Below, piece after piece: positions 1 through 59,108 of a stretch of DNA of 59,108 nt. Below the pieces are notes generated by a model that did not search any database, was not told where the DNA came from, and saw only the letters and a list, made by a program, of their open reading frames with translations. Every line of letters begins with the position of its first letter. The stretch's first letter is position 1. Where the stretch lies: assembly GCA_002269645.1 (NCBI GenBank), contig NIVC01002625.1, forward strand, positions 1 through 59,108. The letters run 5' to 3'. Source of the stretch: Macrostomum lignano (taxonomy: Eukaryota). The position numbers and the translations under genes were made by a program.

Positions 1-3000
1 TCTGTCGACCTTGAATTGATCGTCTTTGAATCGGCGCTCCGCTCTTGCATGTCGCGGCGAGCGCGCTCATCGCGACGTCGTCGTTCGCGGCGACGGTGGC
101 TCACGAGCTCTTCTTGACGCGCGGCTTCTCGCTCTCGCTCTCGCTCTGGCGCTTCAAACTCGGTATTCTTTGCGATTGGAGGCAGATCCTCTTCGATCTC
201 GTTGGCTCGCGATTTCTAATACTTTGTCGTCGAACAGGTCTATCTGGTGTCGCACGTCCTCGTCTACAGTAGTCTTCGTCGGCCTGATCGATCTGATCGA
301 CCTTGAATTGATCTGTTTGAATCGGCGCTTCGCCTTGCAATGTCGCGGCGAGCGCGCTCATCGCGACGTCGTCGTTCGGGCGACGGTGGCTCACGAGCTT
401 CTTTGACGCGCGAGCTTCTCGCTCTCCGCTCCCGTCTGGCGCCTTCAACTCGTTTCTTTGCGCATTGGAGGCAGATCCTCTTCGATCTCGCTGGCTCGCG
501 ATCTTCTAATACTTTGTCGTTCGAACAGGTCTATCTGGTGTCGCACGTCCTCGTCTACAGTATTCTTGTCGGCCTGAACAATCTCTGTCGACCTTGAATT
601 GATCGTTTCGAATCGGCGCTCCGCCCTTTGCAATGTCGCGGCGAGCGCGCTCATCGCGACGTCGTCGTTCGCGGCGACGGTGGCTCACGAGTTCTTTGAC
701 GCGCGGCTTTCGCTCTCGCTCCCGCTCTGGCGCCTTCAACTCGTCTTCTTTGCGCATTGGAGGCAGATCCTCTTCGATCTCGCTGGCTCGCGATTTCTAA
801 TACTTTGTCGTCGAACAGGTCTATCTGGTGTCGCACGTCTTCGTTACTTGCTTGTCGGCCTGAACAATCTCGTCGACCTTGAATTGATCGTCTTCGAATC
901 GGCGCTCCGCTCTTGCAATGTCGCGGCGAGCGCGCTCATCGCGACGTCGTCGTTCGCGGCGACGGTGGCTCACGAGCTCTTCTTGACGCGCGGCTTCTCG
1001 CTCTCGCTCCCGCTCTGGCGCCTTCAACTCGTCTTCTTTGCGCATTGGAGGCAGATCCTCTTCGATCTCGCTGGCCTCGCGATCTTCTAATACTTTGTCG
1101 TCGAACAGGTCTATCTGGTGTCGCACGTCTTCGTCTACTTCTTGTCGGCCTGAACAATCTCGTCGACCTTGAATTGATCGTCTTGAATCGGCGCTCCGCT
1201 CTTGCAATGTCGCGGCGAGCGCGCTCATCGCGACGTCGTCGTTCGCGGCGACGGTGGCTCACGAGCTCTTCTTGACGCGCGGCTTCTCGCTCTCGCTCCC
1301 GCTCTGGCGCCTTCAACTCGTCTTCTTTGCGCATTGGAGGCAGATCCTCTTCGATCTCGCTGGCCTCGCGATCTTCTAATACTTTGTCGTCGAACAGGTC
1401 TATCTGGTGTCGCACGTCCTCGTCTACCTACTTCTTCGTCGGCCTGAACAATCTGTCGACCTTGAATTGATCGTTTCGAATCGGCGCTCCCTTGCAATGT
1501 CGCGGCGAGCGCGCTCATCGCGACGTCGTCGTTCGCGGCGACGGTGGCTCACGAGCTCTTCTTGACGCGCGGCTTCTCGCTCTCGCTCCGCTCTGGCGCC
1601 TTCAACTCGTCTTCTTTGCGCATTGGAGGCAGATCCTCTTCGATCTCGCTGGCCTCGCGATCTTCTAATACTTTGTCGTCGAACAGGTCTATCTGGTGTC
1701 GCACGTCCTCGTCTACCAGTACTTCTTCGTCGGCCTGAACAATCTCGTCGACCTTGAATTGATCGTCTTCGAATCGGCGCTCCGCTCTTGCAATGTCGCG
1801 GCGAGCGCGCTCATCGCGACGTCGTCGTTCGCGGCGACGGTGGCTCACGAGCTCTTCTTGACGCGCGGCTTCTCGCTCTCGCTCCCGCTCTGGCGCCTTC
1901 AACTCGTCTTCTTTGCGCATTGGAGGCAGATCCTCTTCGATCTCGCTGGCCTCGCGATCTTCTAATACTTTGTCGTCGAACAGGTCTATCTGGTGTCGCA
2001 CGTCCTCGTCTACCAGTTTCTTCGTCGGCCTGAACAATCTCGTCGACCTTGAATTGATCGTCTTCGAATCGGCGCTCCGCCTTGCAATGTCGCGGCGAGC
2101 GCGCTCATCGCGACGTCGTCGTTCGCGGCGACGGTGGCTCACGAGCTCTTCTTGACGCGCGGCTTCTCGCTCTCGCTCCCGCTCTGGCGCCTTCAACTCG
2201 TCTTCTTTGCGCATTGGAGGCAGATCCTCTTCGATCTCGCTGGCCTCGCGATCTTCTAATACTTTGTCGTCGAACAGGTCTATCTGGTGTCGCACGTCCT
2301 CGTCTCAGTACTTCTTCGTCGGCCTGAACAATCTCGTCGACCTTGAATTGATCGTCTTCGAATCGGCGCTCCGCTCTTGCAATGTCGCGGCGAGCGCGCT
2401 CATCGCGACGTCGTCGTTCGCGGCGACGGTGGCTCACGAGCTCTTCTTGACGCGCGGCTTCTCGCTCTCGCTCCCGCTCTGGCGCCTTCAACTCGTCTTC
2501 TTTGCGCATTGGAGGCAGATCCTCTTCGATCTCGCTGGCCTCGCGATCTTCTAATACTTTGTCGTCGAACAGGTCTATCTGGTGTCGCACGTCTCGTCTA
2601 CTTCTTGTCGGCCTGAACAATCTCGTCGACCTTGAATTGATCGTCTTCGAATCGGCGCTCCGCTCTTGCAATGTCGCGGCGAGCGCGCTCATCGCGACGT
2701 CGTCGTTCGCGGCGACGGTGGCTCACGAGCTCTTCTTGACGCGCGGCTTCTCGCTCTCGCTCCCGCTCTGGCGCCTTCAACTCGTCTTCTTTGCGCATTG
2801 GAGGCAGATCCTCTTCGATCTCGCTGGCCTCGCGATCTTCTAATACTTTGTCGTCGAACAGGTCTATCTGGTGTCGCACGTCCTCGTCTACTTCTTCGTC
2901 GGCCTGAACAATCTCGTCGACCTTGAATTGATCGTCTTCGAATCGGCGCTCCGCTCTTGCAATGTCGCGGCGAGCGCGCTCATCGCGACGTCGTCGTTCG

Positions 3001-9000: not shown

Positions 9001-12000
9001 TCGCTGGCCTCGCGATCTTCTAATACTTTGTCGTCGAACAGGTCTATCTGGTGTCGCACGTCCTCGTCTACCAGTACTTCTTCGTCGGCCTGAACAATCT
9101 CGTCGACCTTGAATTGATCGTCTTCGAATCGGCGCTCCGCTCTTGCAATGTCGCGGCGAGCGCGCTCATCGCGACGTCGTCGTTCGCGGCGACGGTGGCT
9201 CACGAGCTCTTCTTGACGCGCGGCTTCTCGCTCTCGCTCCCGCTCTGGCGCCTTCAACTCGTCTTCTTTGCGCATTGGAGGCAGATCCTCTTCGATCTCG
9301 CTGGCCTCGCGATCTTCTAATACTTTGTCGTCGAACAGGTCTATCTGGTGTCGCACGTCCTCGTCTACCAGTACTTCTTCGTCGGCCTGAACAATCTCGT
9401 CGACCTTGAATTGATCGTCTTCGAATCGGCGCTCCGCTCTTGCAATGTCGCGGCGAGCGCGCTCATCGCGACGTCGTCGTTCGCGGCGACGGTGGCTCAC
9501 GAGCTCTTCTTGACGCGCGGCTTCTCGCTCTCGCTCCCGCTCTGGCGCCTTCAACTCGTCTTCTTTGCGCATTGGAGGCAGATCCTCTTCGATCTCGCTG
9601 GCCTCGCGATCTTCTAATACTTTGTCGTCGAACAGGTCTATCTGGTGTCGCACGTCCTCGTCTACCAGTACTTCTTCGTCGGCCTGAACAATCTCGTCGA
9701 CCTTGAATTGATCGTCTTCGAATCGGCGCTCCGCTCTTGCAATGTCGCGGCGAGCGCGCTCATCGCGACGTCGTCGTTCGCGGCGACGGTGGCTCACGAG
9801 CTCTTCTTGACGCGCGGCTTCTCGCTCTCGCTCCCGCTCTGGCGCCTTCAACTCGTCTTCTTTGCGCATTGGAGGCAGATCCTCTTCGATCTCGCTGGCC
9901 TCGCGATCTTCTAATACTTTGTCGTCGAACAGGTCTATCTGGTGTCGCACGTCCTCGTCTACTTCTTCGTCGGCCTGAACAATCTCGTCGACCTTGAATT
10001 GATCGTCTTCGAATCGGCGCTCCGCTCTTGCAATGTCGCGGCGAGCGCGCTCATCGCGACGTCGTCGTTCGCGGCGACGGTGGCTCACGAGCTCTTCTTG
10101 ACGCGCGGCTTCTCGCTCTCGCTCCCGCTCTGGCGCCTTCAACTCGTCTTCTTTGCGCATTGGAGGCAGATCCTCTTCGATCTCGCTGGCCTCGCGATCT
10201 TCTAATACTTTGTCGTCGAACAGGTCTATCTGGTGTCGCACGTCCTCGTCTACTTCTTGTCGGCCTGAACAATCTCGTCGACCTTGAATTGATCGTCTTC
10301 GAATCGGCGCTCCGCTCTTGCAATGTCGCGGCGAGCGCGCTCATCGCGACGTCGTCGTTCGCGGCGACGGTGGCTCACGAGCTCTTCTTGACGCGCGGCT
10401 TCTCGCTCTCGCTCCCGCTCTGGCGCCTTCAACTCGTCTTCTTTGCGCATTGGAGGCAGATCCTCTTCGATCTCGCTGGCCTCGCGATCTTCTAATACTT
10501 TGTCGTCGAACAGGTCTATCTGGTGTCGCACGTCCTCGTCTACTTCTTGTCGGCCTGAACAATCTCGTCGACCTTGAATTGATCGTCTTCGAATCGGCGC
10601 TCCGCTCTTGCAATGTCGCGGCGAGCGCGCTCATCGCGACGTCGTCGTTCGCGGCGACGGTGGCTCACGAGCTCTTCTTGACGCGCGGCTTCTCGCTCTC
10701 GCTCCCGCTCTGGCGCCTTCAACTCGTCTTCTTTGCGCATTGGAGGCAGATCCTCTTCGATCTCGCTGGCCTCGCGATCTTCTAATACTTTGTCGTCGAA
10801 CAGGTCTATCTGGTGTCGCACGTCCTCGTCTACCAGTACTTCTTCGTCGGCCTGAACAATCTCGTCGACCTTGAATTGATCGTCTTCGAATCGGCGCTCC
10901 GCTCTTGCAATGTCGCGGCGAGCGCGCTCATCGCGACGTCGTCGTTCGCGGCGACGGTGGCTCACGAGCTCTTCTTGACGCGCGGCTTCTCGCTCTCGCT
11001 CCCGCTCTGGCGCCTTCAACTCGTCTTCTTTGCGCATTGGAGGCAGATCCTCTTCGATCTCGCTGGCCTCGCGATCTTCTAATACTTTGTCGTCGAACAG
11101 GTCTATCTGGTGTCGCACGTCCTCGTCTACCAGTATCGTCTTCGAATCGACCTTGAATTGAGCGCGCTCAACGTCTTGCAATGTCGCGGCGAGCGCGCTC
11201 ATCGCGACGACGGTTCACGACGCGCGGCTTCTCGCTCTCGCTCCCGCTCTGGCGCCTTCAACTCGTCTTCTTTGCGCATTGGAGGCAGATCCTCTTCGAT
11301 CTCGCTGGCCTCGCGATCTTCTAATACTTTGTCGTCGAACAGGTCTATCTGGTGTCGCACGTCCTCGTCTACCAGTACTTCTTCGTCGGCCTGAACAATC
11401 TCGTCGACCTTGAATTGATCGTCTTCGAATCGGCGCTCCGCTCTTGCAATGTCGCGGCGAGCGCGCTCATCGCGACGTCGTCGTTCGCGGCGACGGTGGC
11501 TCACGAGCTCTTCTTGACGCGCGGCTTCTCGCTCTCGCTCCCGCTCTGGCGCCTTCAACTCGTCTTCTTTGCGCATTGGAGGCAGATCCTCTTCGATCTC
11601 GCTGGCCTCGCGATCTTCTAATACTTTGTCGTCGAACAGGTCTATCTGGTGTCGCACGTCCTCGTCTACCAGTACTTCTTCGTCGGCCTGAACAATCTCG
11701 TCGACCTTGAATTGATCGTCTTCGAATCGGCGCTCCGCTCTTGCAATGTCGCGGCGAGCGCGCTCATCGCGACGTCGTCGTTCGCGGCGACGGTGGCTCA
11801 CGAGCTCTTCTTGACGCGCGGCTTCTCGCTCTCGCTCCCGCTCTGGCGCCTTCAACTCGTCTTCTTTGCGCATTGGAGGCAGATCCTCTTCGATCTCGCT
11901 GGCCTCGCGATCTTCTAATACTTTGTCGTCGAACAGGTCTATCTGGTGTCGCACGTCCTCGTCTACCAGTACTTCTTCGTCGGCCTGAACAATCTCGTCG

Positions 12001-47300: not shown

Positions 47301-50300
47301 TGGTGGTACACGCTCCTCCTCGAAGTGGGCCGCCTCCTCCTCCCAGCTGACGCACTCTTCCGCGTACACGTACATCTTGTCGAAGGCTTCGTGCTCCTGC
47401 AACAAGCCTCGCTCATCAGGCACTGGCAGGTCGGCTTCTTCTGCGGATGGCTTCTTCTTCGCCTCTTCCTCAACGGCCTCGAAGAAGTGCTTCTTCTCCT
47501 CTCGCCGCCAGAGCTCTTCCTCCCTAGCCAGTGCTGGTGGTACACGCTCCTCCTCGAAGTGGGCCGCCTCCTCCTCCCAGCTGACGCACTCTTCCGCGTA
47601 CACGTACATCTTGTCGAAGGCTTCGTGCTCCTGCAACAAGCCTCGCTCATCAGGCACTGGCAGGTCGGCTTCTTCTGCGGATGGCTTCTTCTTCGCCTCT
47701 TCCTCAACGGCCTCGAAGAAGTGCTTCTTCTCCTCTCGCCGCCAGAGCTCTTCCTCCCTAGCCAGTGCTGGTGGTACACGCTCCTCCTCGAAGTGGGCCG
47801 CCTCCTCCTCCCAGCTGACGCACTCTTCCGCGTACACGTACATCTTGTCGAAGGCTTCGTGCTCCTGCAACAAGCCTCGCTCATCAGGCACTGGCAGGTC
47901 GGCTTCTTCTGCGGATGGCTTCTTCTTCGCCTCTTCCTCAACGGCCTCGAAGAAGTGCTTCTTCTCCTCTCGCCGCCAGAGCTCTTCCTCCCTAGCCAGT
48001 GCTGGTGGTACACGCTCCTCCTCGAAGTGGGCCGCCTCCTCCTCCCAGCTGACGCACTCTTCCGCGTACACGTACATCTTGTCGAAGGCTTCGTGCTCCT
48101 GCAACAAGCCTCGCTCATCAGGCACTGGCAGGTCGGCTTCTTCTGCGGATGGCTTCTTCTTCGCCTCTTCCTCAACGGCCTCGAAGAAGTGCTTCTTCTC
48201 CTCTCGCCGCCAGAGCTCTTCCTCCCTAGCCAGTGCTGGTGGTACACGCTCCTCCTCGAAGTGGGCCGCCTCCTCCTCCCAGCTGACGCACTCTTCCGCG
48301 TACACGTACATCTTGTCGAAGGCTTCGTGCTCCTGCAACAAGCCTCGCTCATCAGGCACTGGCAGGTCGGCTTCTTCTGCGGATGGCTTCTTCTTCGCCT
48401 CTTCCTCAACGGCCTCGAAGAAGTGCTTCTTCTCCTCTCGCCGCCAGAGCTCTTCCTCCCTAGCCAGTGCTGGTGGTACACGCTCCTCCTCGAAGTGGGC
48501 CGCCTCCTCCTCCCAGCTGACGCACTCTTCCGCGTACACGTACATCTTGTCGAAGGCTTCGTGCTCCTGCAACAAGCCTCGCTCATCAGGCACTGGCAGG
48601 TCGGCTTCTTCTGCGGATGGCTTCTTCTTCGCCTCTTCCTCAACGGCCTCGAAGAAGTGCTTCTTCTCCTCTCGCCGCCAGAGCTCTTCCTCCCTAGCCA
48701 GTGCTGGTGGTACACGCTCCTCCTCGAAGTGGGCCGCCTCCTCCTCCCAGCTGACGCACTCTTCCGCGTACACGTACATCTTGTCGAAGGCTTCGTGCTC
48801 CTGCAACAAGCCTCGCTCATCAGGCACTGGCAGGTCGGCTTCTTCTGCGGATGGCTTCTTCTTCGCCTCTTCCTCAACGGCCTCGAAGAAGTGCTTCTTC
48901 TCCTCTCGCCGCCAGAGCTCTTCCTCCCTAGCCAGTGCTGGTGGTACACGCTCCTCCTCGAAGTGGGCCGCCTCCTCCTCCCAGCTGACGCACTCTTCCG
49001 CGTACACGTACATCTTGTCGAAGGCTTCGTGCTCCTGCAACAAGCCTCGCTCATCAGGCACTGGCAGGTCGGCTTCTTCTGCGGATGGCTTCTTCTTCGC
49101 CTCTTCCTCAACGGCCTCGAAGAAGTGCTTCTTCTCCTCTCGCCGCCAGAGCTCTTCCTCCCTAGCCAGTGCTGGTGGTACACGCTCCTCCTCGAAGTGG
49201 GCCGCCTCCTCCTCCCAGCTGACGCACTCTTCCGCGTACACGTACATCTTGTCGAAGGCTTCGTGCTCCTGCAACAAGCCTCGCTCATCAGGCACTGGCA
49301 GGTCGGCTTCTTCTGCGGATGGCTTCTTCTTCGCCTCTTCCTCAACGGCCTCGAAGAAGTGCTTCTTCTCCTCTCGCCGCCAGAGCTCTTCCTCCCTAGC
49401 CAGTGCTGGTGGTACACGCTCCTCCTCGAAGTGGGCCGCCTCCTCCTCCCAGCTGACGCACTCTTCCGCGTACACGTACATCTTGTCGAAGGCTTCGTGC
49501 TCCTGCAACAAGCCTCGCTCATCAGGCACTGGCAGGTCGGCTTCTTCTGCGGATGGCTTCTTCTTCGCCTCTTCCTCAACGGCCTCGAAGAAGTGCTTCT
49601 TCTCCTCTCGCCGCCAGAGCTCTTCCTCCCTAGCCAGTGCTGGTGGTACACGCTCCTCCTCGAAGTGGGCCGCCTCCTCCTCCCAGCTGACGCACTCTTC
49701 CGCGTACACGTACATCTTGTCGAAGGCTTCGTGCTCCTGCAACAAGCCTCGCTCATCAGGCACTGGCAGGTCGGCTTCTTCTGCGGATGGCTTCTTCTTC
49801 GCCTCTTCCTCAACGGCCTCGAAGAAGTGCTTCTTCTCCTCTCGCCGCCAGAGCTCTTCCTCCCTAGCCAGTGCTGGTGGTACACGCTCCTCCTCGAAGT
49901 GGGCCGCCTCCTCCTCCCAGCTGACGCACTCTTCCGCGTACACGTACATCTTGTCGAAGGCTTCGTGCTCCTGCAACAAGCCTCGCTCATCAGGCACTGG
50001 CAGGTCGGCTTCTTCTGCGGATGGCTTCTTCTTCGCCTCTTCCTCAACGGCCTCGAAGAAGTGCTTCTTCTCCTCTCGCCGCCAGAGCTCTTCCTCCCTA
50101 GCCAGTGCTGGTGGTACACGCTCCTCCTCGAAGTGGGCCGCCTCCTCCTCCCAGCTGACGCACTCTTCCGCGTACACGTACATCTTGTCGAAGGCTTCGT
50201 GCTCCTGCAACAAGCCTCGCTCATCAGGCACTGGCAGGTCGGCTTCTTCTGCGGATGGCTTCTTCTTCGCCTCTTCCTCAACGGCCTCGAAGAAGTGCTT

Positions 50301-53300
50301 CTTCTCCTCTCGCCGCCAGAGCTCTTCCTCCCTAGCCAGTGCTGGTGGTACACGCTCCTCCTCGAAGTGGGCCGCCTCCTCCTCCCAGCTGACGCACTCT
50401 TCCGCGTACACGTACATCTTGTCGAAGGCTTCGTGCTCCTGCAACAAGCCTCGCTCATCAGGCACTGGCAGGTCGGCTTCTTCTGCGGATGGCTTCTTCT
50501 TCGCCTCTTCCTCAACGGCCTCGAAGAAGTGCTTCTTCTCCTCTCGCCGCCAGAGCTCTTCCTCCCTAGCCAGTGCTGGTGGTACACGCTCCTCCTCGAA
50601 GTGGGCCGCCTCCTCCTCCCAGCTGACGCACTCTTCCGCGTACACGTACATCTTGTCGAAGGCTTCGTGCTCCTGCAACAAGCCTCGCTCATCAGGCACT
50701 GGCAGGTCGGCTTCTTCTGCGGATGGCTTCTTCTTCGCCTCTTCCTCAACGGCCTCGAAGAAGTGCTTCTTCTCCTCTCGCCGCCAGAGCTCTTCCTCCC
50801 TAGCCAGTGCTGGTGGTACACGCTCCTCCTCGAAGTGGGCCGCCTCCTCCTCCCAGCTGACGCACTCTTCCGCGTACACGTACATCTTGTCGAAGGCTTC
50901 GTGCTCCTGCAACAAGCCTCGCTCATCAGGCACTGGCAGGTCGGCTTCTTCTGCGGATGGCTTCTTCTTCGCCTCTTCCTCAACGGCCTCGAAGAAGTGC
51001 TTCTTCTCCTCTCGCCGCCAGAGCTCTTCCTCCCTAGCCAGTGCTGGTGGTACACGCTCCTCCTCGAAGTGGGCCGCCTCCTCCTCCCAGCTGACGCACT
51101 CTTCCGCGTACACGTACATCTTGTCGAAGGCTTCGTGCTCCTGCAACAAGCCTCGCTCATCAGGCACTGGCAGGTCGGCTTCTTCTGCGGATGGCTTCTT
51201 CTTCGCCTCTTCCTCAACGGCCTCGAAGAAGTGCTTCTTCTCCTCTCGCCGCCAGAGCTCTTCCTCCCTAGCCAGTGCTGGTGGTACACGCTCCTCCTCG
51301 AAGTGGGCCGCCTCCTCCTCCCAGCTGACGCACTCTTCCGCGTACACGTACATCTTGTCGAAGGCTTCGTGCTCCTGCAACAAGCCTCGCTCATCAGGCA
51401 CTGGCAGGTCGGCTTCTTCTGCGGATGGCTTCTTCTTCGCCTCTTCCTCAACGGCCTCGAAGAAGTGCTTCTTCTCCTCTCGCCGCCAGAGCTCTTCCTC
51501 CCTAGCCAGTGCTGGTGGTACACGCTCCTCCTCGAAGTGGGCCGCCTCCTCCTCCCAGCTGACGCACTCTTCCGCGTACACGTACATCTTGTCGAAGGCT
51601 TCGTGCTCCTGCAACAAGCCTCGCTCATCAGGCACTGGCAGGTCGGCTTCTTCTGCGGATGGCTTCTTCTTCGCCTCTTCCTCAACGGCCTCGAAGAAGT
51701 GCTTCTTCTCCTCTCGCCGCCAGAGCTCTTCCTCCCTAGCCAGTGCTGGTGGTACACGCTCCTCCTCGAAGTGGGCCGCCTCCTCCTCCCAGCTGACGCA
51801 CTCTTCCGCGTACACGTACATCTTGTCGAAGGCTTCGTGCTCCTGCAACAAGCCTCGCTCATCAGGCACTGGCAGGTCGGCTTCTTCTGCGGATGGCTTC
51901 TTCTTCGCCTCTTCCTCAACGGCCTCGAAGAAGTGCTTCTTCTCCTCTCGCCGCCAGAGCTCTTCCTCCCTAGCCAGTGCTGGTGGTACACGCTCCTCCT
52001 CGAAGTGGGCCGCCTCCTCCTCCCAGCTGACGCACTCTTCCGCGTACACGTACATCTTGTCGAAGGCTTCGTGCTCCTGCAACAAGCCTCGCTCATCAGG
52101 CACTGGCAGGTCGGCTTCTTCTGCGGATGGCTTCTTCTTCGCCTCTTCCTCAACGGCCTCGAAGAAGTGCTTCTTCTCCTCTCGCCGCCAGAGCTCTTCC
52201 TCCCTAGCCAGTGCTGGTGGTACACGCTCCTCCTCGAAGTGGGCCGCCTCCTCCTCCCAGCTGACGCACTCTTCCGCGTACACGTACATCTTGTCGAAGG
52301 CTTCGTGCTCCTGCAACAAGCCTCGCTCATCAGGCACTGGCAGGTCGGCTTCTTCTGCGGATGGCTTCTTCTTCGCCTCTTCCTCAACGGCCTCGAAGAA
52401 GTGCTTCTTCTCCTCTCGCCGCCAGAGCTCTTCCTCCCTAGCCAGTGCTGGTGGTACACGCTCCTCCTCGAAGTGGGCCGCCTCCTCCTCCCAGCTGACG
52501 CACTCTTCCGCGTACACGTACATCTTGTCGAAGGCTTCGTGCTCCTGCAACAAGCCTCGCTCATCAGGCACTGGCAGGTCGGCTTCTTCTGCGGATGGCT
52601 TCTTCTTCGCCTCTTCCTCAACGGCCTCGAAGAAGTGCTTCTTCTCCTCTCGCCGCCAGAGCTCTTCCTCCCTAGCCAGTGCTGGTGGTACACGCTCCTC
52701 CTCGAAGTGGGCCGCCTCCTCCTCCCAGCTGACGCACTCTTCCGCGTACACGTACATCTTGTCGAAGGCTTCGTGCTCCTGCAACAAGCCTCGCTCATCA
52801 GGCACTGGCAGGTCGGCTTCTTCTGCGGATGGCTTCTTCTTCGCCTCTTCCTCAACGGCCTCGAAGAAGTGCTTCTTCTCCTCTCGCCGCCAGAGCTCTT
52901 CCTCCCTAGCCAGTGCTGGTGGTACACGCTCCTCCTCGAAGTGGGCCGCCTCCTCCTCCCAGCTGACGCACTCTTCCGCGTACACGTACATCTTGTCGAA
53001 GGCTTCGTGCTCCTGCAACAAGCCTCGCTCATCAGGCACTGGCAGGTCGGCTTCTTCTGCGGATGGCTTCTTCTTCGCCTCTTCCTCAACGGCCTCGAAG
53101 AAGTGCTTCTTCTCCTCTCGCCGCCAGAGCTCTTCCTCCCTAGCCAGTGCTGGTGGTACACGCTCCTCCTCGAAGTGGGCCGCCTCCTCCTCCCAGCTGA
53201 CGCACTCTTCCGCGTACACGTACATCTTGTCGAAGGCTTCGTGCTCCTGCAACAAGCCTCGCTCATCAGGCACTGGCAGGTCGGCTTCTTCTGCGGATGG

Positions 53301-54911
53301 CTTCTTCTTCGCCTCTTCCTCAACGGCCTCGAAGAAGTGCTTCTTCTCCTCTCGCCGCCAGAGCTCTTCCTCCCTAGCCAGTGCTGGTGGTACACGCTCC
53401 TCCTCGAAGTGGGCCGCCTCCTCCTCCCAGCTGACGCACTCTTCCGCGTACACGTACATCTTGTCGAAGGCTTCGTGCTCCTGCAACAAGCCTCGCTCAT
53501 CAGGCACTGGCAGGTCGGCTTCTTCTGCGGATGGCTTCTTCTTCGCCTCTTCCTCAACGGCCTCGAAGAAGTGCTTCTTCTCCTCTCGCCGCCAGAGCTC
53601 TTCCTCCCTAGCCAGTGCTGGTGGTACACGCTCCTCCTCGAAGTGGGCCGCCTCCTCCTCCCAGCTGACGCACTCTTCCGCGTACACGTACATCTTGTCG
53701 AAGGCTTCGTGCTCCTGCAACAAGCCTCGCTCATCAGGCACTGGCAGGTCGGCTTCTTCTGCGGATGGCTTCTTCTTCGCCTCTTCCTCAACGGCCTCGA
53801 AGAAGTGCTTCTTCTCCTCTCGCCGCCAGAGCTCTTCCTCCCTAGCCAGTGCTGGTGGTACACGCTCCTCCTCGAAGTGGGCCGCCTCCTCCTCCCAGCT
53901 GACGCACTCTTCCGCGTACACGTACATCTTGTCGAAGGCTTCGTGCTCCTGCAACAAGCCTCGCTCATCAGGCACTGGCAGGTCGGCTTCTTCTGCGGAT
54001 GGCTTCTTCTTCGCCTCTTCCTCAACGGCCTCGAAGAAGTGCTTCTTCTCCTCTCGCCGCCAGAGCTCTTCCTCCCTAGCCAGTGCTGGTGGTACACGCT
54101 CCTCCTCGAAGTGGGCCGCCTCCTCCTCCCAGCTGACGCACTCTTCCGCGTACACGTACATCTTGTCGAAGGCTTCGTGCTCCTGCAACAAGCCTCGCTC
54201 ATCAGGCACTGGCAGGTCGGCTTCTTCTGCGGATGGCTTCTTCTTCGCCTCTTCCTCAACGGCCTCGAAGAAGTGCTTCTTCTCCTCTCGCCGCCAGAGC
54301 TCTTCCTCCCTAGCCAGTGCTGGTGGTACACGCTCCTCCTCGAAGTGGGCCGCCTCCTCCTCCCAGCTGACGCACTCTTCCGCGTACACGTACATCTTGT
54401 CGAAGGCTTCGTGCTCCTGCAACAAGCCTCGCTCATCAGGCACTGGCAGGTCGGCTTCTTCTGCGGATGGCTTCTTCTTCGCCTCTTCCTCAACGGCCTC
54501 GAAGAAGTGCTTCTTCTCCTCTCGCCGCCAGAGCTCTTCCTCCCTAGCCAGTGCTGGTGGTACACGCTCCTCCTCGAAGTGGGCCGCCTCCTCCTCCCAG
54601 CTGACGCACTCTTCCGCGTACACGTACATCTTGTCGAAGGCTTCGTGCTCCTGCAACAAGCCTCGCTCATCAGGCACTGGCAGGTCGGCTTCTTCTGCGG
54701 ATGGCTTCTTCTTCGCCTCTTCCTCAACGGCCTCGAAGAAGTGCTTCTTCTCCTCTCGCCGCCAGAGCTCTTCCTCCCTAGCCAGTGCTGGTGGTACACG
54801 CTCCTCCTCGAAGTGGGCCGCCTCCTCCTCCCAGCTGACGCACTCTTCCGCGTACACGTACATCTTGTCGAAGGCTTCGTGCTCCTGCAACAAGCCTCGC
54901 TCATCAGGCAC
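38037..54911 (-). CDS. Putative giant Glu-rich repetitive protein region (78-aa repeat), 5' partial; the frame probably continues to the window end
   Basis: 5624-codon ORF of PDERGLLQEHEAFDKMYVYAEECVSWEEEAAHFEEERVPPALAREEELWRREEKKHFFEAVEEEAKKKPSAEEADLPV repeats. This frame is chosen from four open ones by helical, protein-like composition, GAG/AAG preference (16 of 22 Glu GAG; 6 of 6 Lys AAG), and same strand and character as array 1. Between-unit variation is too scarce for a selection test. Confidence 0.65.
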   Translation of the reverse strand: MPDERGLLQEHEAFDKMYVYAEECVSWEEEAAHFEEERVPPALAREEELWRREEKKHFFEAVEEEAKKKPSAEEADLPVPDERGLLQEHEAFDKMYVYAEECVSWEEEAAHFEEERVPPALAREEELWRREEKKHFFEAVEEEAKKKPSAEEADLPVPDERGLLQEHEAFDKMYVYAEECVSWEEEAAHFEEERVPPALAREEELWRREEKKHFFEAVEEEAKKKPSAEEADLPVPDERGLLQEHEAFDKMYVYAEECVSWEEEAAHFEEERVPPALAREEELWRREEKKHFFEAVEEEAKKKPSAEEADLPVPDERGLLQEHEAFDKMYVYAEECVSWEEEAAHFEEERVPPALAREEELWRREEKKHFFEAVEEEAKKKPSAEEADLPVPDERGLLQEHEAFDKMYVYAEECVSWEEEAAHFEEERVPPALAREEELWRREEKKHFFEAVEEEAKKKPSAEEADLPVPDERGLLQEHEAFDKMYVYAEECVSWEEEAAHFEEERVPPALAREEELWRREEKKHFFEAVEEEAKKKPSAEEADLPVPDERGLLQEHEAFDKMYVYAEECVSWEEEAAHFEEERVPPALAREEELWRREEKKHFFEAVEEEAKKKPSAEEADLPVPDERGLLQEHEAFDKMYVYAEECVSWEEEAAHFEEERVPPALAREEELWRREEKKHFFEAVEEEAKKKPSAEEADLPVPDERGLLQEHEAFDKMYVYAEECVSWEEEAAHFEEERVPPALAREEELWRREEKKHFFEAVEEEAKKKPSAEEADLPVPDERGLLQEHEAFDKMYVYAEECVSWEEEAAHFEEERVPPALAREEELWRREEKKHFFEAVEEEAKKKPSAEEADLPVPDERGLLQEHEAFDKMYVYAEECVSWEEEAAHFEEERVPPALAREEELWRREEKKHFFEAVEEEAKKKPSAEEADLPVPDERGLLQEHEAFDKMYVYAEECVSWEEEAAHFEEERVPPALAREEELWRREEKKHFFEAVEEEAKKKPSAEEADLPVPDERGLLQEHEAFDKMYVYAEECVSWEEEAAHFEEERVPPALAREEELWRREEKKHFFEAVEEEAKKKPSAEEADLPVPDERGLLQEHEAFDKMYVYAEECVSWEEEAAHFEEERVPPALAREEELWRREEKKHFFEAVEEEAKKKPSAEEADLPVPDERGLLQEHEAFDKMYVYAEECVSWEEEAAHFEEERVPPALAREEELWRREEKKHFFEAVEEEAKKKPSAEEADLPVPDERGLLQEHEAFDKMYVYAEECVSWEEEAAHFEEERVPPALAREEELWRREEKKHFFEAVEEEAKKKPSAEEADLPVPDERGLLQEHEAFDKMYVYAEECVSWEEEAAHFEEERVPPALAREEELWRREEKKHFFEAVEEEAKKKPSAEEADLPVPDERGLLQEHEAFDKMYVYAEECVSWEEEAAHFEEERVPPALAREEELWRREEKKHFFEAVEEEAKKKPSAEEADLPVPDERGLLQEHEAFDKMYVYAEECVSWEEEAAHFEEERVPPALAREEELWRREEKKHFFEAVEEEAKKKPSAEEADLPVPDERGLLQEHEAFDKMYVYAEECVSWEEEAAHFEEERVPPALAREEELWRREEKKHFFEAVEEEAKKKPSAEEADLPVPDERGLLQEHEAFDKMYVYAEECVSWEEEAAHFEEERVPPALAREEELWRREEKKHFFEAVEEEAKKKPSAEEADLPVPDERGLLQEHEAFDKMYVYAEECVSWEEEAAHFEEERVPPALAREEELWRREEKKHFFEAVEEEAKKKPSAEEADLPVPDERGLLQEHEAFDKMYVYAEECVSWEEEAAHFEEERVPPALAREEELWRREEKKHFFEAVEEEAKKKPSAEEADLPVPDERGLLQEHEAFDKMYVYAEECVSWEEEAAHFEEERVPPALAREEELWRREEKKHFFEAVEEEAKKKPSAEEADLPVPDERGLLQEHEAFDKMYVYAEECVSWEEEAAHFEEERVPPALAREEELWRREEKKHFFEAVEEEAKKKPSAEEADLPVPDERGLLQEHEAFDKMYVYAEECVSWEEEAAHFEEERVPPALAREEELWRREEKKHFFEAVEEEAKKKPSAEEADLPVPDERGLLQEHEAFDKMYVYAEECVSWEEEAAHFEEERVPPALAREEELWRREEKKHFFEAVEEEAKKKPSAEEADLPVPDERGLLQEHEAFDKMYVYAEECVSWEEEAAHFEEERVPPALAREEELWRREEKKHFFEAVEEEAKKKPSAEEADLPVPDERGLLQEHEAFDKMYVYAEECVSWEEEAAHFEEERVPPALAREEELWRREEKKHFFEAVEEEAKKKPSAEEADLPVPDERGLLQEHEAFDKMYVYAEECVSWEEEAAHFEEERVPPALAREEELWRREEKKHFFEAVEEEAKKKPSAEEADLPVPDERGLLQEHEAFDKMYVYAEECVSWEEEAAHFEEERVPPALAREEELWRREEKKHFFEAVEEEAKKKPSAEEADLPVPDERGLLQEHEAFDKMYVYAEECVSWEEEAAHFEEERVPPALAREEELWRREEKKHFFEAVEEEAKKKPSAEEADLPVPDERGLLQEHEAFDKMYVYAEECVSWEEEAAHFEEERVPPALAREEELWRREEKKHFFEAVEEEAKKKPSAEEADLPVPDERGLLQEHEAFDKMYVYAEECVSWEEEAAHFEEERVPPALAREEELWRREEKKHFFEAVEEEAKKKPSAEEADLPVPDERGLLQEHEAFDKMYVYAEECVSWEEEAAHFEEERVPPALAREEELWRREEKKHFFEAVEEEAKKKPSAEEADLPVPDERGLLQEHEAFDKMYVYAEECVSWEEEAAHFEEERVPPALAREEELWRREEKKHFFEAVEEEAKKKPSAEEADLPVPDERGLLQEHEAFDKMYVYAEECVSWEEEAAHFEEERVPPALAREEELWRREEKKHFFEAVEEEAKKKPSAEEADLPVPDERGLLQEHEAFDKMYVYAEECVSWEEEAAHFEEERVPPALAREEELWRREEKKHFFEAVEEEAKKKPSAEEADLPVPDERGLLQEHEAFDKMYVYAEECVSWEEEAAHFEEERVPPALAREEELWRREEKKHFFEAVEEEAKKKPSAEEADLPVPDERGLLQEHEAFDKMYVYAEECVSWEEEAAHFEEERVPPALAREEELWRREEKKHFFEAVEEEAKKKPSAEEADLPVPDERGLLQEHEAFDKMYVYAEECVSWEEEAAHFEEERVPPALAREEELWRREEKKHFFEAVEEEAKKKPSAEEADLPVPDERGLLQEHEAFDKMYVYAEECVSWEEEAAHFEEERVPPALAREEELWRREEKKHFFEAVEEEAKKKPSAEEADLPVPDERGLLQEHEAFDKMYVYAEECVSWEEEAAHFEEERVPPALAREEELWRREEKKHFFEAVEEEAKKKPSAEEADLPVPDERGLLQEHEAFDKMYVYAEECVSWEEEAAHFEEERVPPALAREEELWRREEKKHFFEAVEEEAKKKPSAEEADLPVPDERGLLQEHEAFDKMYVYAEECVSWEEEAAHFEEERVPPALAREEELWRREEKKHFFEAVEEEAKKKPSAEEADLPVPDERGLLQEHEAFDKMYVYAEECVSWEEEAAHFEEERVPPALAREEELWRREEKKHFFEAVEEEAKKKPSAEEADLPVPDERGLLQEHEAFDKMYVYAEECVSWEEEAAHFEEERVPPALAREEELWRREEKKHFFEAVEEEAKKKPSAEEADLPVPDERGLLQEHEAFDKMYVYAEECVSWEEEAAHFEEERVPPALAREEELWRREEKKHFFEAVEEEAKKKPSAEEADLPVPDERGLLQEHEAFDKMYVYAEECVSWEEEAAHFEEERVPPALAREEELWRREEKKHFFEAVEEEAKKKPSAEEADLPVPDERGLLQEHEAFDKMYVYAEECVSWEEEAAHFEEERVPPALAREEELWRREEKKHFFEAVEEEAKKKPSAEEADLPVPDERGLLQEHEAFDKMYVYAEECVSWEEEAAHFEEERVPPALAREEELWRREEKKHFFEAVEEEAKKKPSAEEADLPVPDERGLLQEHEAFDKMYVYAEECVSWEEEAAHFEEERVPPALAREEELWRREEKKHFFEAVEEEAKKKPSAEEADLPVPDERGLLQEHEAFDKMYVYAEECVSWEEEAAHFEEERVPPALAREEELWRREEKKHFFEAVEEEAKKKPSAEEADLPVPDERGLLQEHEAFDKMYVYAEECVSWEEEAAHFEEERVPPALAREEELWRREEKKHFFEAVEEEAKKKPSAEEADLPVPDERGLLQEHEAFDKMYVYAEECVSWEEEAAHFEEERVPPALAREEELWRREEKKHFFEAVEEEAKKKPSAEEADLPVPDERGLLQEHEAFDKMYVYAEECVSWEEEAAHFEEERVPPALAREEELWRREEKKHFFEAVEEEAKKKPSAEEADLPVPDERGLLQEHEAFDKMYVYAEECVSWEEEAAHFEEERVPPALAREEELWRREEKKHFFEAVEEEAKKKPSAEEADLPVPDERGLLQEHEAFDKMYVYAEECVSWEEEAAHFEEERVPPALAREEELWRREEKKHFFEAVEEEAKKKPSAEEADLPVPDERGLLQEHEAFDKMYVYAEECVSWEEEAAHFEEERVPPALAREEELWRREEKKHFFEAVEEEAKKKPSAEEADLPVPDERGLLQEHEAFDKMYVYAEECVSWEEEAAHFEEERVPPALAREEELWRREEKKHFFEAVEEEAKKKPSAEEADLPVPDERGLLQEHEAFDKMYVYAEECVSWEEEAAHFEEERVPPALAREEELWRREEKKHFFEAVEEEAKKKPSAEEADLPVPDERGLLQEHEAFDKMYVYAEECVSWEEEAAHFEEERVPPALAREEELWRREEKKHFFEAVEEEAKKKPSAEEADLPVPDERGLLQEHEAFDKMYVYAEECVSWEEEAAHFEEERVPPALAREEELWRREEKKHFFEAVEEEAKKKPSAEEADLPVPDERGLLQEHEAFDKMYVYAEECVSWEEEAAHFEEERVPPALAREEELWRREEKKHFFEAVEEEAKKKPSAEEADLPVPDERGLLQEHEAFDKMYVYAEECVSWEEEAAHFEEERVPPALAREEELWRREEKKHFFEAVEEEAKKKPSAEEADLPVPDERGLLQEHEAFDKMYVYAEECVSWEEEAAHFEEERVPPALAREEELWRREEKKHFFEAVEEEAKKKPSAEEADLPVPDERGLLQEHEAFDKMYVYAEECVSWEEEAAHFEEERVPPALAREEELWRREEKKHFFEAVEEEAKKKPSAEEADLPVPDERGLLQEHEAFDKMYVYAEECVSWEEEAAHFEEERVPPALAREEELWRREEKKHFFEAVEEEAKKKPSAEEADLPVPDERGLLQEHEAFDKMYVYAEECVSWEEEAAHFEEERVPPALAREEELWRREEKKHFFEAVEEEAKKKPSAEEADLPVPDERGLLQEHEAFDKMYVYAEECVSWEEEAAHFEEERVPPALAREEELWRREEKKHFFEAVEIKEKRRLGFTRLFERRRQDSTKSVKEAIRESCKLAGEELAARGEKTFRVRKRRRSRRRARPPSPDDGDERARRLQERSAIRRDQFSERLFRPRRGRATPTG

Positions 54912-57900
54912 TGGCAGGTCGGCTTCTTCTGCGGATGGCTTCTTCTTCGCCTCTTCCTCAACGGCCTCGAAGAAGTGCTTCTTCTCCTCTCGCCGCCAGA
55001 GCTCTTCCTCCTAGCCAGTGCTGGTGGTACACGCTCCTCCTCGAAGTGGGCCGCCTCCTCCTCCCAGCTGACGCACTCTTCCGCGTACACGTACATCTTG
55101 TCGAAGGCTTCGTGCTCCTGCAACAAGCCTCGCTCATCAGGCACTGGCAGGTCGGCTTTTCTGCGGATGGCTTCTTCTTCGCCTCTTCCTCAACGGCCTC
55201 GAAGAAGTGCTTCTTCTCCTCTCGCCGCCAGAGCTTTCTCCCTAGCCAGTGCTGGTGGTACACGTCTCTCGAAGTGGGCGCCTCCTCTCCAGCTGACGCA
55301 CTCTTCCGCGTACACGTACATCTTGTCGAAGGCTTCGTGCTCCTGCAACAAGCTCGCTCATCAGGCACTGGCAGGTCGGCTTCTTGCGGATGCTTCTTCT
55401 TGCCTCTTTCAACGGCTCGAAGAAGTGTTCTTTCCTCTCGCCGCCAGAGCTCTTCCTCCCTAGCCAGTGCTGGTGGTACACGCTCCTCCTCGAAGTGGGC
55501 CGCCTCCTCCTCCCAGCTGACGCACTCTTCCGCGTACACGTACATCTTGTCGAAGGCTTCGTGCTCCTGCAACAAGCCTCGTCATCAGGCACTGGCAGGT
55601 CGGCTTCTTCTGCGGATGGCTTCTTCTTCGCTCTCTCCTCAACGGCCTCGAAGAAGTGCTTTTTCCTCTCGCCGCCAGAGCTCTTCCTCCCTAGCCAGTG
55701 CTGGTGGTACACGCTCCTCTCGAAGTGGGCCGCCTCCTCCTCCAGCTGACGCACTCTTCGCGTACGTACATCTTGTCGAAGGCTCGTGCTCCTGCAACAA
55801 GCCTCGCTCATCAGGCACTGGCAGGTCGGCTTCTTCTGCGGATGGCTTCTTCTTCGCCTCTTCCTCAACGGCTCGAAGAAGTGCTCTTTCTTCTCGCCGC
55901 CAGAGCTCTTCCTCCCTAGCCAGTGCTGGTGGTACACGCTCCTCCTCGAAGTGGGCCGCCTCCTCTCCAGCTGACGCACTCTTCGCGTACAGTACATCTT
56001 GTCGAAGGCTTCGTGTCCTGCAACAAGCCTCGCTCATCAGGCACTGGCAGGTCGGCTTTTCTGCGGATGGCTTCTTTTCGCCTCTTCCTCAACGGCTCGA
56101 AGAAGTGCTTCTTCTCCTTCGCCGCCAGAGCTTTCCTCCCTAGCCAGTGCTGGTTACACGCTCCTCCTCGAAGTGGGCCGCTCTCCTCCAGCTGACGCAC
56201 TCTTCCGCGTACACGTAATCTTGTCGAAGGCTTCGTGCTCCTGCAACAAGCCTCGCTCATCAGGCACTGGCAGGTCGGCTTCTTCTGCGGATGGCTTCTT
56301 CTTCGCCTCTTCCTCAACGGCCTCGAAGAAGTGCTTCTTCTCTCTCGCCGCCAGAGCTCTTCCTCCTAGCCAGTGCTGGTGGTACACGCTCCTCCTCGAA
56401 GTGGGCCGCCTCCTCCTCCAGCTGACGCACTCTTCCGCGTACACGTACATCTTGTCGAAGGCTTCGTGCTCTGCAACAAGCCTCGCTCATCAGGCACTGG
56501 CAGGTCGGTTTTCTGCGGATGGCTTCTTCTTCGCCTCTTCCTCAACGGCTCGAAGAAGTGCTTCTTTCTCTCTCTCCGCCAGAGCTCTTCCTCCTAGCCA
56601 GTGCTGGTGGTACACGCTCTCTCGAAGTGGGCGCTCTCTCTCCCAGCTGACGCACTCTTCGCGTACACGTACATCTTGTCGAAGGTTCGTGCTCCTGCAA
56701 CAAGCCTCGCTCATCAGGCACTGGCAGGTCGGCTTCTTCTGATGGCGCCTCTTCCTCAACGGCCTCGAAGAAGTGCTTCTTCTCCTCTCGCCGCCAGAGC
56801 TCTCTCCCTAGCCAGTGCTGGTGGTACACGCTCCTCCTCGAAGTGGCCGCCTCCTCCTCCCAGCTGACGCACTCTTCGCGTACACGTAATCTTTGTCGAA
56901 GGCTTCGTGCTCCTGCAACAAGCTCGCTCATCAGGCACTGGCAGGTCGGCTTCTTCTGCGGATGGCTTCTTTTCGCTCTTCCTCAACGGCTCGAAGAAGT
57001 GCTTCTTCTCTCTCGCCAGAGCTCTTCCTCCCTAGCCAGTGCTGGTGGTACACGCCTCCTCGAAGTGGGCCGCCTCTCCTCCCAGCTGCACTCTTCCGCG
57101 TACACGTACATCTTGTCGAAGGCTTCGTGCTCCTGCAACAAGCCTCGCTCATCAGGCACTGGCAGGTCGGCTTCTTCTGCGGATGGCTTCTTTCTTCGCC
57201 TCTTCCTCAACGGCTCGAAGAAGTGCTTCTTCTCTCTCTCGCCGCCAGAGCTCTTCCTCCCTAGCCAGTGCTGGTGGTACACGCTCCTCCTCGAAGTGGG
57301 CGCCTCTCCTCCAGCTGACGCACTCTTCCGCGTACACGTACATCTTGTCGAAGGCTTCGTGCTCCTGCAAAAGCCTCGTCATCAGGCACTGGCAGGTCGG
57401 CTTCTTCTGCGGATGGCTTTCTTCTTCGCCTCTTCTCAACGGCTCGAAGAAGTGCTTCTTCTCTCTCGCCGCCAGAGCTCTTCCTCCCTAGCAGTGCTGG
57501 TGGTACACGCTCCTCCTCGAAGTGGGCGCCTCTCTCCAGCTGACGCACTCTTCGCGTACACGTACATCTTGTCGAAGGCTTCGTGCTCCTGCAACAAGCC
57601 TCGTCATCAGGCACTGGCAGGTCGGCTTCTTTGCGGATGGCTTCTTCTTCGCCTCTTCCTCAACGGCCTCGAAGAAGTGCTTCTTCTCCTCTCGCCGCCA
57701 GAGCTTTCCTCCCTAGCCAGTGCTGGTGTACACGCTCCTCTCGAAGTGGGCCGCCTCTCCTCCCAGCTGACGCACTCTTCGCGTACACGTACATCTTGTC
57801 GAAGGCTTCGTGCTCCTGCAACAAGCCTCGTCATCAGGCACTGGCAGGTCGGCTTCTTCTGCGGATGGCTTCTTCTTCGCCTCTTCCTCAACGGCCTCGA

Positions 57901-59108
57901 AGAAGTGCTTTTCTCCTCTCGCCGCCAGAGCTCTTCTCCTAGCCAGTGCTGGTGGTACACGCTCTCCTCGAAGTGGGCCGCCTCCTCCTCCAGCTGACGC
58001 ACTCTTCCGCGTACAGTACATCTTGTCGAAGCTTCGTGCTCCTGCAACAAGCCTCGCTCATCAGGCACTGGCAGGTCGGCTTCTTCTGCGGATGGCTTCT
58101 TCGCCTCTTCCTCAACGGCCTCGAAGAAGTGCTTCTTCTCTCTCGCCGCCAGAGCTCTTCCTCCTAGCCAGTGCTGGTGGTACACGCTCCTCCTCGAAGT
58201 GGGCCGCCTCCTCCTCCCAGCTGACGCACTCTTCGCGTACAGTACATCTTGTCGAAGGCTTCGTGCTCCTGAACAAGCTCGCTCATCAGGCACTGGCAGG
58301 TCGGCTTCTTCTGCGGATGGCTTCTTTTCGCCTCTTCCTCAACGGCCTCGAAGAAGTGCTTTTTCCTCTCGCGCCAGAGCTCTTCCTCCCTAGCAGTGCT
58401 GGTGGTACACGCTCCTCCTCGAAGTGGGCGCCTCCTCCCCAGCTGACGCACCTTTCGCGTACACGTACATCTTGTCGAAGGCTTCGTGCTCCTGCAACAA
58501 GCCTCGCTCATCAGGCACTGGCAGGTCGGCTTTTCTGCGGATGGTTCTTCTTCGCCTCTTCCTCAACGGCCTCGAAGAAGTGCTTCTTCTCCTCTCGCCG
58601 CCAGAGCTCTTCCTCCCTAGCCAGTGCTGTGTGGTACACGCTCCTCCTCGAAGTGGGCCGCCTCCTCTCCCAGCTGACGCACTCTTTCCGCGTACACGTA
58701 CATCTTGTCGAAGGCTTCGTGCTCCTGCAACAAGCCTCGCTCATCAGGCACTGGCAGGTCGGCTTCTTCTGCGGATGGCTTCTTCTTCGCCTCTTCCTCA
58801 ACGGCCTCGAAGAAGTGCTTCTTCTCTCTCGCCGCCAGAGCTCTTCCTCCTAGCCAGTGCTGGTGGTACACGCTCCTCCTCGAAGTGGGGCGCTCCTCCT
58901 CCCAGCTGACGCACTCTTCCGCGTACACGTACATCTTGTCGAAGGCTTCGTGCTCCTGCAACAAGCCTCGCTTCATCAGGCCACTGGCAGGTCGGCTTTC
59001 TTCTGCGGATGGCTTCTTTCTTCGCCTCTTCCTCAACGGCTCGAAGAAGTGCTTCTTCCTCTCGCGCGCCAGAGCTCTTCCTCCCTAGCCAGTGCTGGTG
59101 GTACACGC
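38345..59108. repeat. Tandem array 2: ~89 units of 234 bp, truncated by the window end
   Basis: cctcgaagaagtg recurs at 38351, 38585 and so on. No difference seen between units until the first 1-bp deletion at ~55010 (about 71 units). Manual unit count A32 C88 G53 T61, 60.3% GC. Units beyond 55010 carry scattered small deletions. Confidence 0.98.

Follow-up and report, generated by a model that had tools for sequence, protein, structure and literature searches.

A probable single-exon giant gene built of two tandem-repeat arrays in the flatworm Macrostomum lignano

The free-living flatworm Macrostomum lignano probably carries a very large, essentially single-exon protein-coding gene built of two different tandem-repeat arrays, of which contig NIVC01002625.1 represents an internal, error-ridden piece on the minus strand. 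The whole contig (59,108 bp; assembly Mlig_3_7, GCA_002269645.1) was analysed and is referred to here as the window. An earlier note, made from the letters of the window, had proposed that one array (array 2) is N-terminal and the other (array 1) C-terminal in one intronless protein of about 2 MDa. The order of the arrays is borne out by other scaffolds and by an older gene model, whereas a reading frame through the junction is not readable in the window, no intact open reading frame (ORF) is present there, and the complete reading frame is not provable from this assembly.

Results

Two tandem arrays fill the window

Mlig_3_7 is a Canu 1.4 assembly of PacBio reads for which Pilon, run with Illumina and RNA-seq reads, was the only polishing step and SSPACE provided the scaffolding (PMC5730564). 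Tandem Repeats Finder (TRF) resolved the window into an array of period 297 at 4-37301 (array 1), split by the program at ~11.15 kb, and an array of period 234 at 38343-59108 (array 2), with a spacing of 1,041 bp. Both periods are multiples of three (297 = 99 × 3; 234 = 78 × 3). The minus strand is purine-rich over the full window, and the products of both arrays on this strand are rich in E, R, K and D. These results agree with the earlier description of two E/R/K-rich minus-strand arrays about 1 kb apart and devoid of a visible start, C-terminus or intergenic DNA; both contig ends lie inside arrays, and the window contains no non-repeat DNA. A 141-aa protein encoded in the window is recorded on this contig only.

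In the direction of the gene, the window holds ~89 units of 78 amino acids (aa; array 2) followed by ~127 units of 94-99 aa (array 1). The array-2 consensus unit on the minus strand, in the frame designated A, is DLPVPDERGLLQEHEAFDKMYVYAEECVSWEEEAAHFEEERVPPALAREEELWRREEKKHFFEAVEEEAKKKPSAEEA (78 aa) and contains the peptides GLLQEHEAFDK, HFFEAVEEEAK and VPPALAR. The canonical array-1 consensus unit on the same strand is RRDERARRDIARAERRFEDDQFKVDEIVQADEEVLVDEDVRHQIDLFDDKVLEDREASEIEEDLPPMRKEDELKAPEREREREAARQEELVSHRRRERR (99 aa), with the peptides FEDDQFK, HQIDLFDDK and EASEIEEDLPPMR. Two further array-1 subtypes are found in the proximal zone, namely A' (297 bp, 99 aa) and B (282 bp, 94 aa; ...HQLDLIDDAELEAREASEIQKELIFIIKEKLKAKERESESPEELVSH...), and clean unit-length variants of 282, 291 and 294 bp occur. 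The zones of the window are listed in Table 1.

Array 2 continues an ATG-initiated coding sequence

Full HMMER was used to search 1.84 billion representative proteins and returned five matches, all from M. lignano, of which P0001 is the window's own and PAA53305.1 led to scaffold NIVC01003104.1. On this scaffold an ATG (MKRRKSKQNR...) opens an ORF whose first 572 codons are unique and AT-richer and which then extends unbroken into array 2 in the E-rich frame A, where ...KQAKKA is directly followed by NLPVPDERGLL.... Over the unique part, the coding frame contains 0 stops and every one of the five alternative frames 24-42 (P about 3e-15); the ATG is preceded, at a distance of 21 nt, by an in-frame TGA. 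The first two array-2 units on NIVC01003104.1 carry a GAA>GAG change that is silent in frame A but causes K>R in the other open frame. The K/R/S-rich frame was thus rejected as the true frame of array 2, as the N-terminal coding sequence (CDS) is continuous with the E-rich frame and GAA>GAG is synonymous there. Translation of the GenBank gene ranges over array 2 from the first base onward yields the K/R/S-rich frame (PTCQCLMSEACCRSTKPS...); the exact product of this range was not found in the protein collection searched.

The 5' end is identical (0 mismatches over 2.29 kb) on NIVC01003104.1, NIVC01000770.1 and NIVC01000167.1. On NIVC01000770.1 the ATG, the 572 unique codons and 42 perfect array-2 units form an ORF of 3,850 codons free of stops, a lower bound given that it reaches the end of the stretch examined, and the intact array-2 units of the window are identical to the in-frame copies on other scaffolds. 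GenBank names the N-terminal CDS 'hypothetical protein BOX15_Mlig022173g3, partial' (PAA53306.1/PAA77023.1), in a gene annotation that was built from transcriptome assemblies (PMC5730564). The gene identifiers Mlig003749 and Mlig022173 were not found in the full texts and the supplements of M. lignano papers that were searched.

Variation and composition within the arrays also follow codons. Subtypes A' and B have a net difference of 15 nt, which keeps the frame, and a ratio of nonsynonymous to synonymous polymorphism (pN/pS) of 0.41-0.45; their differences fall at codon positions 3, 1 and 2 in 17, 14 and 8 cases, respectively, a small sample, and include the synonymous changes CAG/CAA, GAC/GAT (twice), CTG/TTG, CTG/CTA, TTG/TTA and AAG/AAA. 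Synonymous array-1 variants were also detected at unit positions 36 and 114 on scaffold NIVC01000167.1. The period-3 composition of the two coding frames matches, with G at ~0.5 in position 1 and A at ~0.46 in position 2. Judged from these sequences, the coding status of the arrays is well supported, and continuity with the N-terminus is the decisive item.

Several further features of the 5' region were observed. The arrays have a GC content of 59-60%, the unique N-terminal CDS 43% and the flanks 25-38%, so that a sharp break of composition lies inside one ORF (stretch L002, 1-7000, compared with the window). A short motif recurs ~150 residues apart in the unique region, as TEYEATVSLFEEF and TEYEVTLSIAEPL (L002 6140-6570, residues about 430-560), and may be an internal repeat. 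In stretch L005, a 1-nt deletion cuts the annotated N-terminal CDS to 331 aa. The assembled length of array 2 differs among scaffolds with the same 5' end, being 15.8 units plus a gap, 19.6 units plus a gap and at least 42 units, and these arrays (L002, L004 and L005) are shorter than that of the window with its at least 89 units; the differences reflect redundancy and collapse in the assembly of the neopolyploid DV1 line.

Frame breaks in the window are probable consensus drop-outs

The minus-strand ORF 38037..54911 (5,624 codons) represents the E-rich frame of array 2 and, as had been stated earlier, continues past the last unit into array-1-like sequence. The single ORF of ~19,700 codons that had been considered is not present: only 38037-54911 is open, the junction is collapsed and array 1 is divided on the minus strand into dozens of ORF pieces, with 46 of its 127 units not being a multiple of three in length and a longest intact run of 13 units. 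Beyond 54.9 kb, losses of single G's at scattered places also disrupt the array-2 frame. An open frame in array 2 is weak evidence of coding, because four of the six frames (two per strand) are open across it (38091-55463; 5,581-5,790 codons, 16.7-17.4 kb).

The breaks have a common character. Array-2 units near the contig end (55.1-59.1 kb) have lost 4-14 single G's each, at varying positions and with nearly no substitutions, a pattern that is the signature of a low-coverage, unpolished consensus. Outside the zone of A' and B units (29.5-37.3 kb), units depart from their consensus nearly always by deletion, with substitutions being almost absent, which argues against real divergence, as this would give the opposite ratio. 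In the array-1 core, 'deletions' of 1-2 nt recur at unit positions 36, 233-234, 241 and 260 and hit four of the five sites that separate canonical from A' units (233, 234, 241 and 260); the fifth difference, at unit position 245, was seen once, as a G>T substitution. Unit position 36 is the site of a synonymous AGA/AGG polymorphism on another scaffold, where del36 occurs in adjacent units. The distal part of array 1 contains an in-frame 291-bp variant (DEEVDED) without the residue pair 'LV', as well as a DKQVDED variant that is 290 bp long and broken in frame (GACAAGAAGTAGACGAGGAC); the in-frame 291-bp counterpart of the latter is present on NIVC01000167.1 and in two models of the older ML2 annotation (P0003 and P0004). 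Error density rises in the last three array-1 units at the contig end.

Since the breaks consist almost only of deletions and lie at subtype-polymorphic sites or near the contig ends, we infer, with good support, that they are assembly artefacts, i.e., consensus drop-outs that arose where reads of different unit subtypes were piled together. Pilon is unable to repair such sites in multi-mapping repeats.

Two local patterns were also noted. At 11150-11500, where TRF splits the array, two adjoining array-1 units of 268 and 271 bp are 26-29 nt short through several deletions, which looks like an internal low-quality patch or a contig join. At 27790-30424, several units combine del233-234 (GG) with del260 (A), giving a net change of -3 nt and a restored frame (...KAPERARARSRASEELV...); this 'compensated frameshift' is most readily accounted for by two drop-outs, each at a site of difference between the subtypes, rather than by a real variant.

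The same data bear on whether the arrays are non-coding, either as a satellite derived from coding arrays or as their decayed duplicate, with real frameshifts. The window resembles satellite DNA in its tens of kilobases of head-to-tail, near-identical units, its strong strand asymmetry and its masking as tandem repeats; simple and tandem repeats make up 15% of the genome, the DV1 assembly is highly redundant, and both the 46 out-of-frame array-1 units and the four open frames of array 2 are compatible with this explanation. The window differs from satellite DNA in that its unit lengths are multiples of three, its frame continues an ATG-initiated CDS and its variants keep that frame and are enriched in synonymous changes, rather than being indifferent to codon phase. 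Moreover, real decay would give the opposite of the observed excess of deletions over substitutions, the breaks fall on subtype-polymorphic sites or increase toward the contig ends, and intact units are identical to in-frame copies elsewhere. Non-coding arrays are therefore considered very unlikely.

Table 1. Zones of the window, in the direction of the gene.
Zone	Coordinates	Strand	Content
Array 2, contig-end zone	54923..59108	-	~18.5 array-2 units (234-bp repeat) with lengths reduced to 217-233 bp; ORF broken
Array 2 core	38343..54922	-	70 consecutive 100% identical 234-bp units (78 aa) in frame A; last unit truncated; zone inside ORF 38037..54911
Junction	37302..38342	-	Collapsed array-2 and B-type array-1 units; stops in all frames
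Array 1 proximal heterogeneous zone	29549..37301	-	Clean A' and B units interleaved with broken 'mosaic' units of 268-296 bp
Array 1 core	11478..29548	-	Canonical 297-bp unit (99 aa) with recurrent 1-2-nt 'deletions'
Array 1 distal zone, to contig end	4..11477	-	Canonical units mixed with 291-bp and 290-bp variants

Array 2 borders directly on collapsed array-1 units

The 1,041-bp spacer consists of one deletion-ridden array-2 unit (about 38343-38170), directly followed by ~3.5 B-type array-1 units, each reduced to a length of 115-215 nt. Between 37302 and 38342, neither unique nor intergenic sequence was recognisable, and every alignable piece is derived from an array-2 or array-1 unit. The end of the canonical array-2 unit (GCA GAA GAA) and the array-1 unit (CCA GAA GAG CTC) share the heptamer CAGAAGA in the same codon phase, and a clean join would read in frame as ...KKKPSAEE-ELVSHRRR....

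Scaffold NIVC01000167.1 gives independent support for array order and orientation: on one strand, the N-terminus is followed by 19.6 units of array 2 and, beyond an N gap of 2.2 kb, by at least 10 units of array 1. Together with the ATG-started CDS that enters array 2 on three scaffolds and the C-terminal ML2 model described below, this scaffold upholds the proposed order. The two units have no detectable similarity to each other (E=16); a relationship between them was rejected, and the suggestion in the earlier note that the arrays could be tandem relatives is not supported; a false overlap between the arrays is likewise unlikely, because their units are unrelated.

Two other arrangements were weighed on this evidence. 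The arrays could belong to two adjacent genes of the same orientation, or to two cistrons of one trans-spliced unit, with the end of the array-2 protein and the start of the array-1 protein hidden inside the junction. This would suit the unreadable junction and the dissimilar units, and polycistronic precursors bearing several trans-splice sites account for ~7% of the transcription units in M. lignano (PMC5730564). However, the junction retains no trace of a 3' untranslated region, an intergenic stretch, a start region or a unique second N-terminus, and the end of an array-2 unit passes straight into an array-1 unit at the shared heptamer in the same codon phase, making such an arrangement improbable. 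A chimeric misjoin of arrays from different loci or genes is the least probable of the explanations weighed here: although the contig is made of repeats only and has its worst consensus quality at the junction, the independent scaffold NIVC01000167.1 (mate-pair scaffolding) has the same order and orientation, and the units share no similarity able to create a false overlap.

The C-terminal side is represented by an older gene model

P0004 (UniRef A0A1I8HPW6) is an ML2 gene model of 3,445 aa with ~20 array-1 units, a degenerating last unit and unique sequence (GQFRGATSVDWAQLESQMERAMRYLEGK...), followed by a WIF domain, a transmembrane segment and a tyrosine-kinase domain (residues 2021-2597 for these three). 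The combination indicates, at the level of domain content, a RYK-like receptor, which is taken to be the product of a neighbouring gene fused to array 1 by the gene model. The tail of P0004 after the kinase resembles translated non-coding or antisense read-through. Array 1 would run into ...FKEDQLKFVEIDQADKQVDEDVRHQLDLLDEAGQFRGATSVDWAQLESQMERAMRYLEGK... and a stop codon, with the RYK-like (WIF and kinase) gene lying separately beyond.

At the other end of the giant gene, all three scaffold copies (L002 1-3591, L003 858-8740 and L005 1-8178) have an EMP70 (TM9SF, PF02990) gene upstream of it, in the opposite orientation. Tandem repeats of 30, 59 and 73 bp in this region differ in copy number between L004 and L005.

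The units are acidic and predicted to be helical

The array-2 and array-1 units have net charges of -14 and -11, isoelectric points (pI) of 4.5 and 4.8 and charged-residue contents of 46% and 60%, respectively, and are almost free of cysteine. A model with 89 and 127 units comprises 20,088 aa, 2.44 MDa and a pI of 4.7. No hydrophobic signal segment was detected at the N-terminus, suggesting a cytoplasmic or nuclear location of the product.

Structures were predicted by AlphaFold from single sequences (mean predicted local distance difference test, pLDDT, ~74). The predicted array-2 unit has two helices (35 and 28 residues) and a 13-residue proline linker, while the predicted array-1 unit has a ~57-residue helix, a ~23-residue helix and then a proline hinge. 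The secondary structure of these models is credible and the packing undefined. The long array-1 helix (pLDDT 85-96) is 64% charged and 16% hydrophobic, with a modest excess of opposite-charge pairs at i+3/i+4 (z = 1.5 and 2.4).

Homology searches gave few matches. Pfam found nothing above threshold in either unit or in the N-terminus; PDB sequence searches and a Foldseek search of PDB with the array-2 model gave no matches, and Rfam found nothing in the window and L002. A word-indexed protein search returned no match for unit 2 and, for unit 1, nothing beyond the fragment from the window itself and two fragments of ML2. The same type of search found nothing with the concatenated N- and C-terminal unique regions, a weak result in that it also missed the known members P0006 and P0004. 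Exact array-2 DNA was, as expected, absent from the bacterial and archaeal genome collection, and no published M. lignano satellite or tandem-repeat family matching the units was found in the literature. One metagenome protein of 46 aa (P0008; stretch L006, JGI 3300008263, Ga0114349_1016786) fell into the 90% cluster of the N-terminal protein but has no real similarity to it and was rejected as spurious.

Discussion

The reading favoured here is that of a single gene that begins with an ATG and a 572-aa unique region, has no signal peptide and is seen at its start on other scaffolds. This region would be followed by array 2 with 89 or more 78-aa units, by array 1 with 127 or more units of 94-99 aa (B and A' subtypes first, then canonical units) and finally by a unique C-terminal region known only from the older gene model. 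The frameshifts and stops of the window would be consensus errors of a Canu PacBio assembly polished with Pilon alone and not biological. The product would reach at least 20,000 aa (~2.4 MDa), strongly acidic and predicted to be all-alpha-helical, with each unit forming two helices closed by a proline-containing hinge.

Several points weigh against this reading. The window junction is a collapsed consensus with stops in all frames and provides no in-frame read-through, and the N gap of NIVC01000167.1 falls at the boundary between the arrays. The C-terminus derives from an over-extended ML2 model that swallows the RYK-like kinase gene together with apparently non-coding sequence. Transcript support is indirect, consisting of GenBank CDS features on the minus strand over both arrays in a transcriptome-guided annotation. 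Copy numbers, and hence protein size, are unreliable, since the arrays are longer than PacBio reads, and the perfect identity of the 70 array-2 units may partly reflect homogenisation by polishing. No homologue outside M. lignano was present among the 1.84 billion representatives, which precludes a cross-species test of conservation. For the function, the assignment rests on composition and on single-sequence AlphaFold models with predicted template modelling (pTM) scores of 0.19 and 0.25.

Within these limits, the product may tentatively be viewed as a cytoplasmic, cytoskeleton-associated modular rod, spacer or spring, the length of which would be set by copy number and the copies of which would be kept near-identical by unequal recombination and gene conversion. 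In its strongest form, the proposal is of one polypeptide of at least 20,000 residues (~2.4 MDa or more), encoded by a single exon of >60 kb and made of >200 near-identical helical modules of two unrelated types, which would be restricted to the Macrostomum lineage, act as a polyanionic rod or spring on the micrometre scale within some cell structure and rank among the largest single-exon animal proteins known. This full form is possible, but the odds are against it.

The nearest precedent for the architecture comes from the same species. M. lignano adhesion protein 2 (Mlig-ap2) is a giant of 14,794 aa with two different consecutive arrays at its centre (21 × 255 aa, then 25 × 221 aa); it has no homologue in nr, is secreted and contains vWD, TIL, LDL-receptor and TSP-1 domains (PMC6410801). 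The present protein differs from it in its acidic helical units of 78 and 99 aa, almost no cysteine, and the absence of a signal peptide and of any Pfam domain. Mlig-ap1, also a giant of this species, contains KR regions, which are long, repetitive, highly charged and extremely basic (pI above 14; PMC6410801), whereas the units here are acidic and only an out-of-frame reading of array 2 is K/R-rich. The features described for these adhesive proteins also include EGF and C-lectin domains (PMC6410801). Identity with either adhesion protein is excluded by the unit lengths, the pI of 4.5-4.8, the lack of a Pfam domain and the lack of a signal segment.

Among bacterial proteins, region II of Marinomonas MpAFP comprises ~120 identical 104-residue repeats and serves as an extender that sets length within a protein of megadalton size (PMC4083281). 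It is similar in having >100 essentially identical repeats of ~100 residues and different in belonging to a bacterial, secreted protein with a Ca2+-dependent Ig-like beta fold, the candidate here being eukaryotic, helical and intracellular; the parallel is no more than an analogy.

A giant of the titin or twitchin type, built of Ig and Fn3 modules, was rejected, given that no Pfam match reached threshold and the predicted fold is all-helical; titin, too, is no more than an analogy. The trypanosomatid proteins FAZ10 and ClpGM6 are megadalton-sized, intronless and charged, with long arrays of near-identical units. Membership in that group was excluded by the M. lignano origin of the contig and of all five HMMER matches; with a flatworm as the organism and no match outside M. 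lignano, the likeness is one of analogy only. The array-1 unit is also reminiscent of trichohyalin and of ER/K single alpha-helices (SAHs), being 60% charged (E, R and D) with a predicted ~57-residue helix and few hydrophobic positions, but its charge pattern is only modestly ordered and sequence homology is lacking. The array-2 helices, unlike an SAH, are amphipathic and aromatic-rich, and a packed hairpin would fit them better.

On sequence grounds, the candidate is a new, lineage-restricted giant tandem-repeat protein gene that is unrelated in sequence to Mlig-ap2. It also shows how such genes are lost from resources: in Mlig_3_7 it is represented by short fragments named 'hypothetical protein, partial' that are scattered across four or more scaffolds, the older ML2 annotation fuses it with the neighbouring RYK-like kinase gene, and it is probably masked as a tandem repeat in current resources. 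If the proposed reading is true, M. lignano would possess, besides the adhesive Mlig-ap2, a second and unrelated protein of ~15,000 aa or more made from two consecutive arrays, which, unlike Mlig-ap2, would be intracellular and polyanionic. It would further provide a clean case of extreme concerted evolution inside a coding region and a lineage-restricted giant gene in a flatworm that is genetically tractable by RNA interference, in situ hybridisation and transgenesis.

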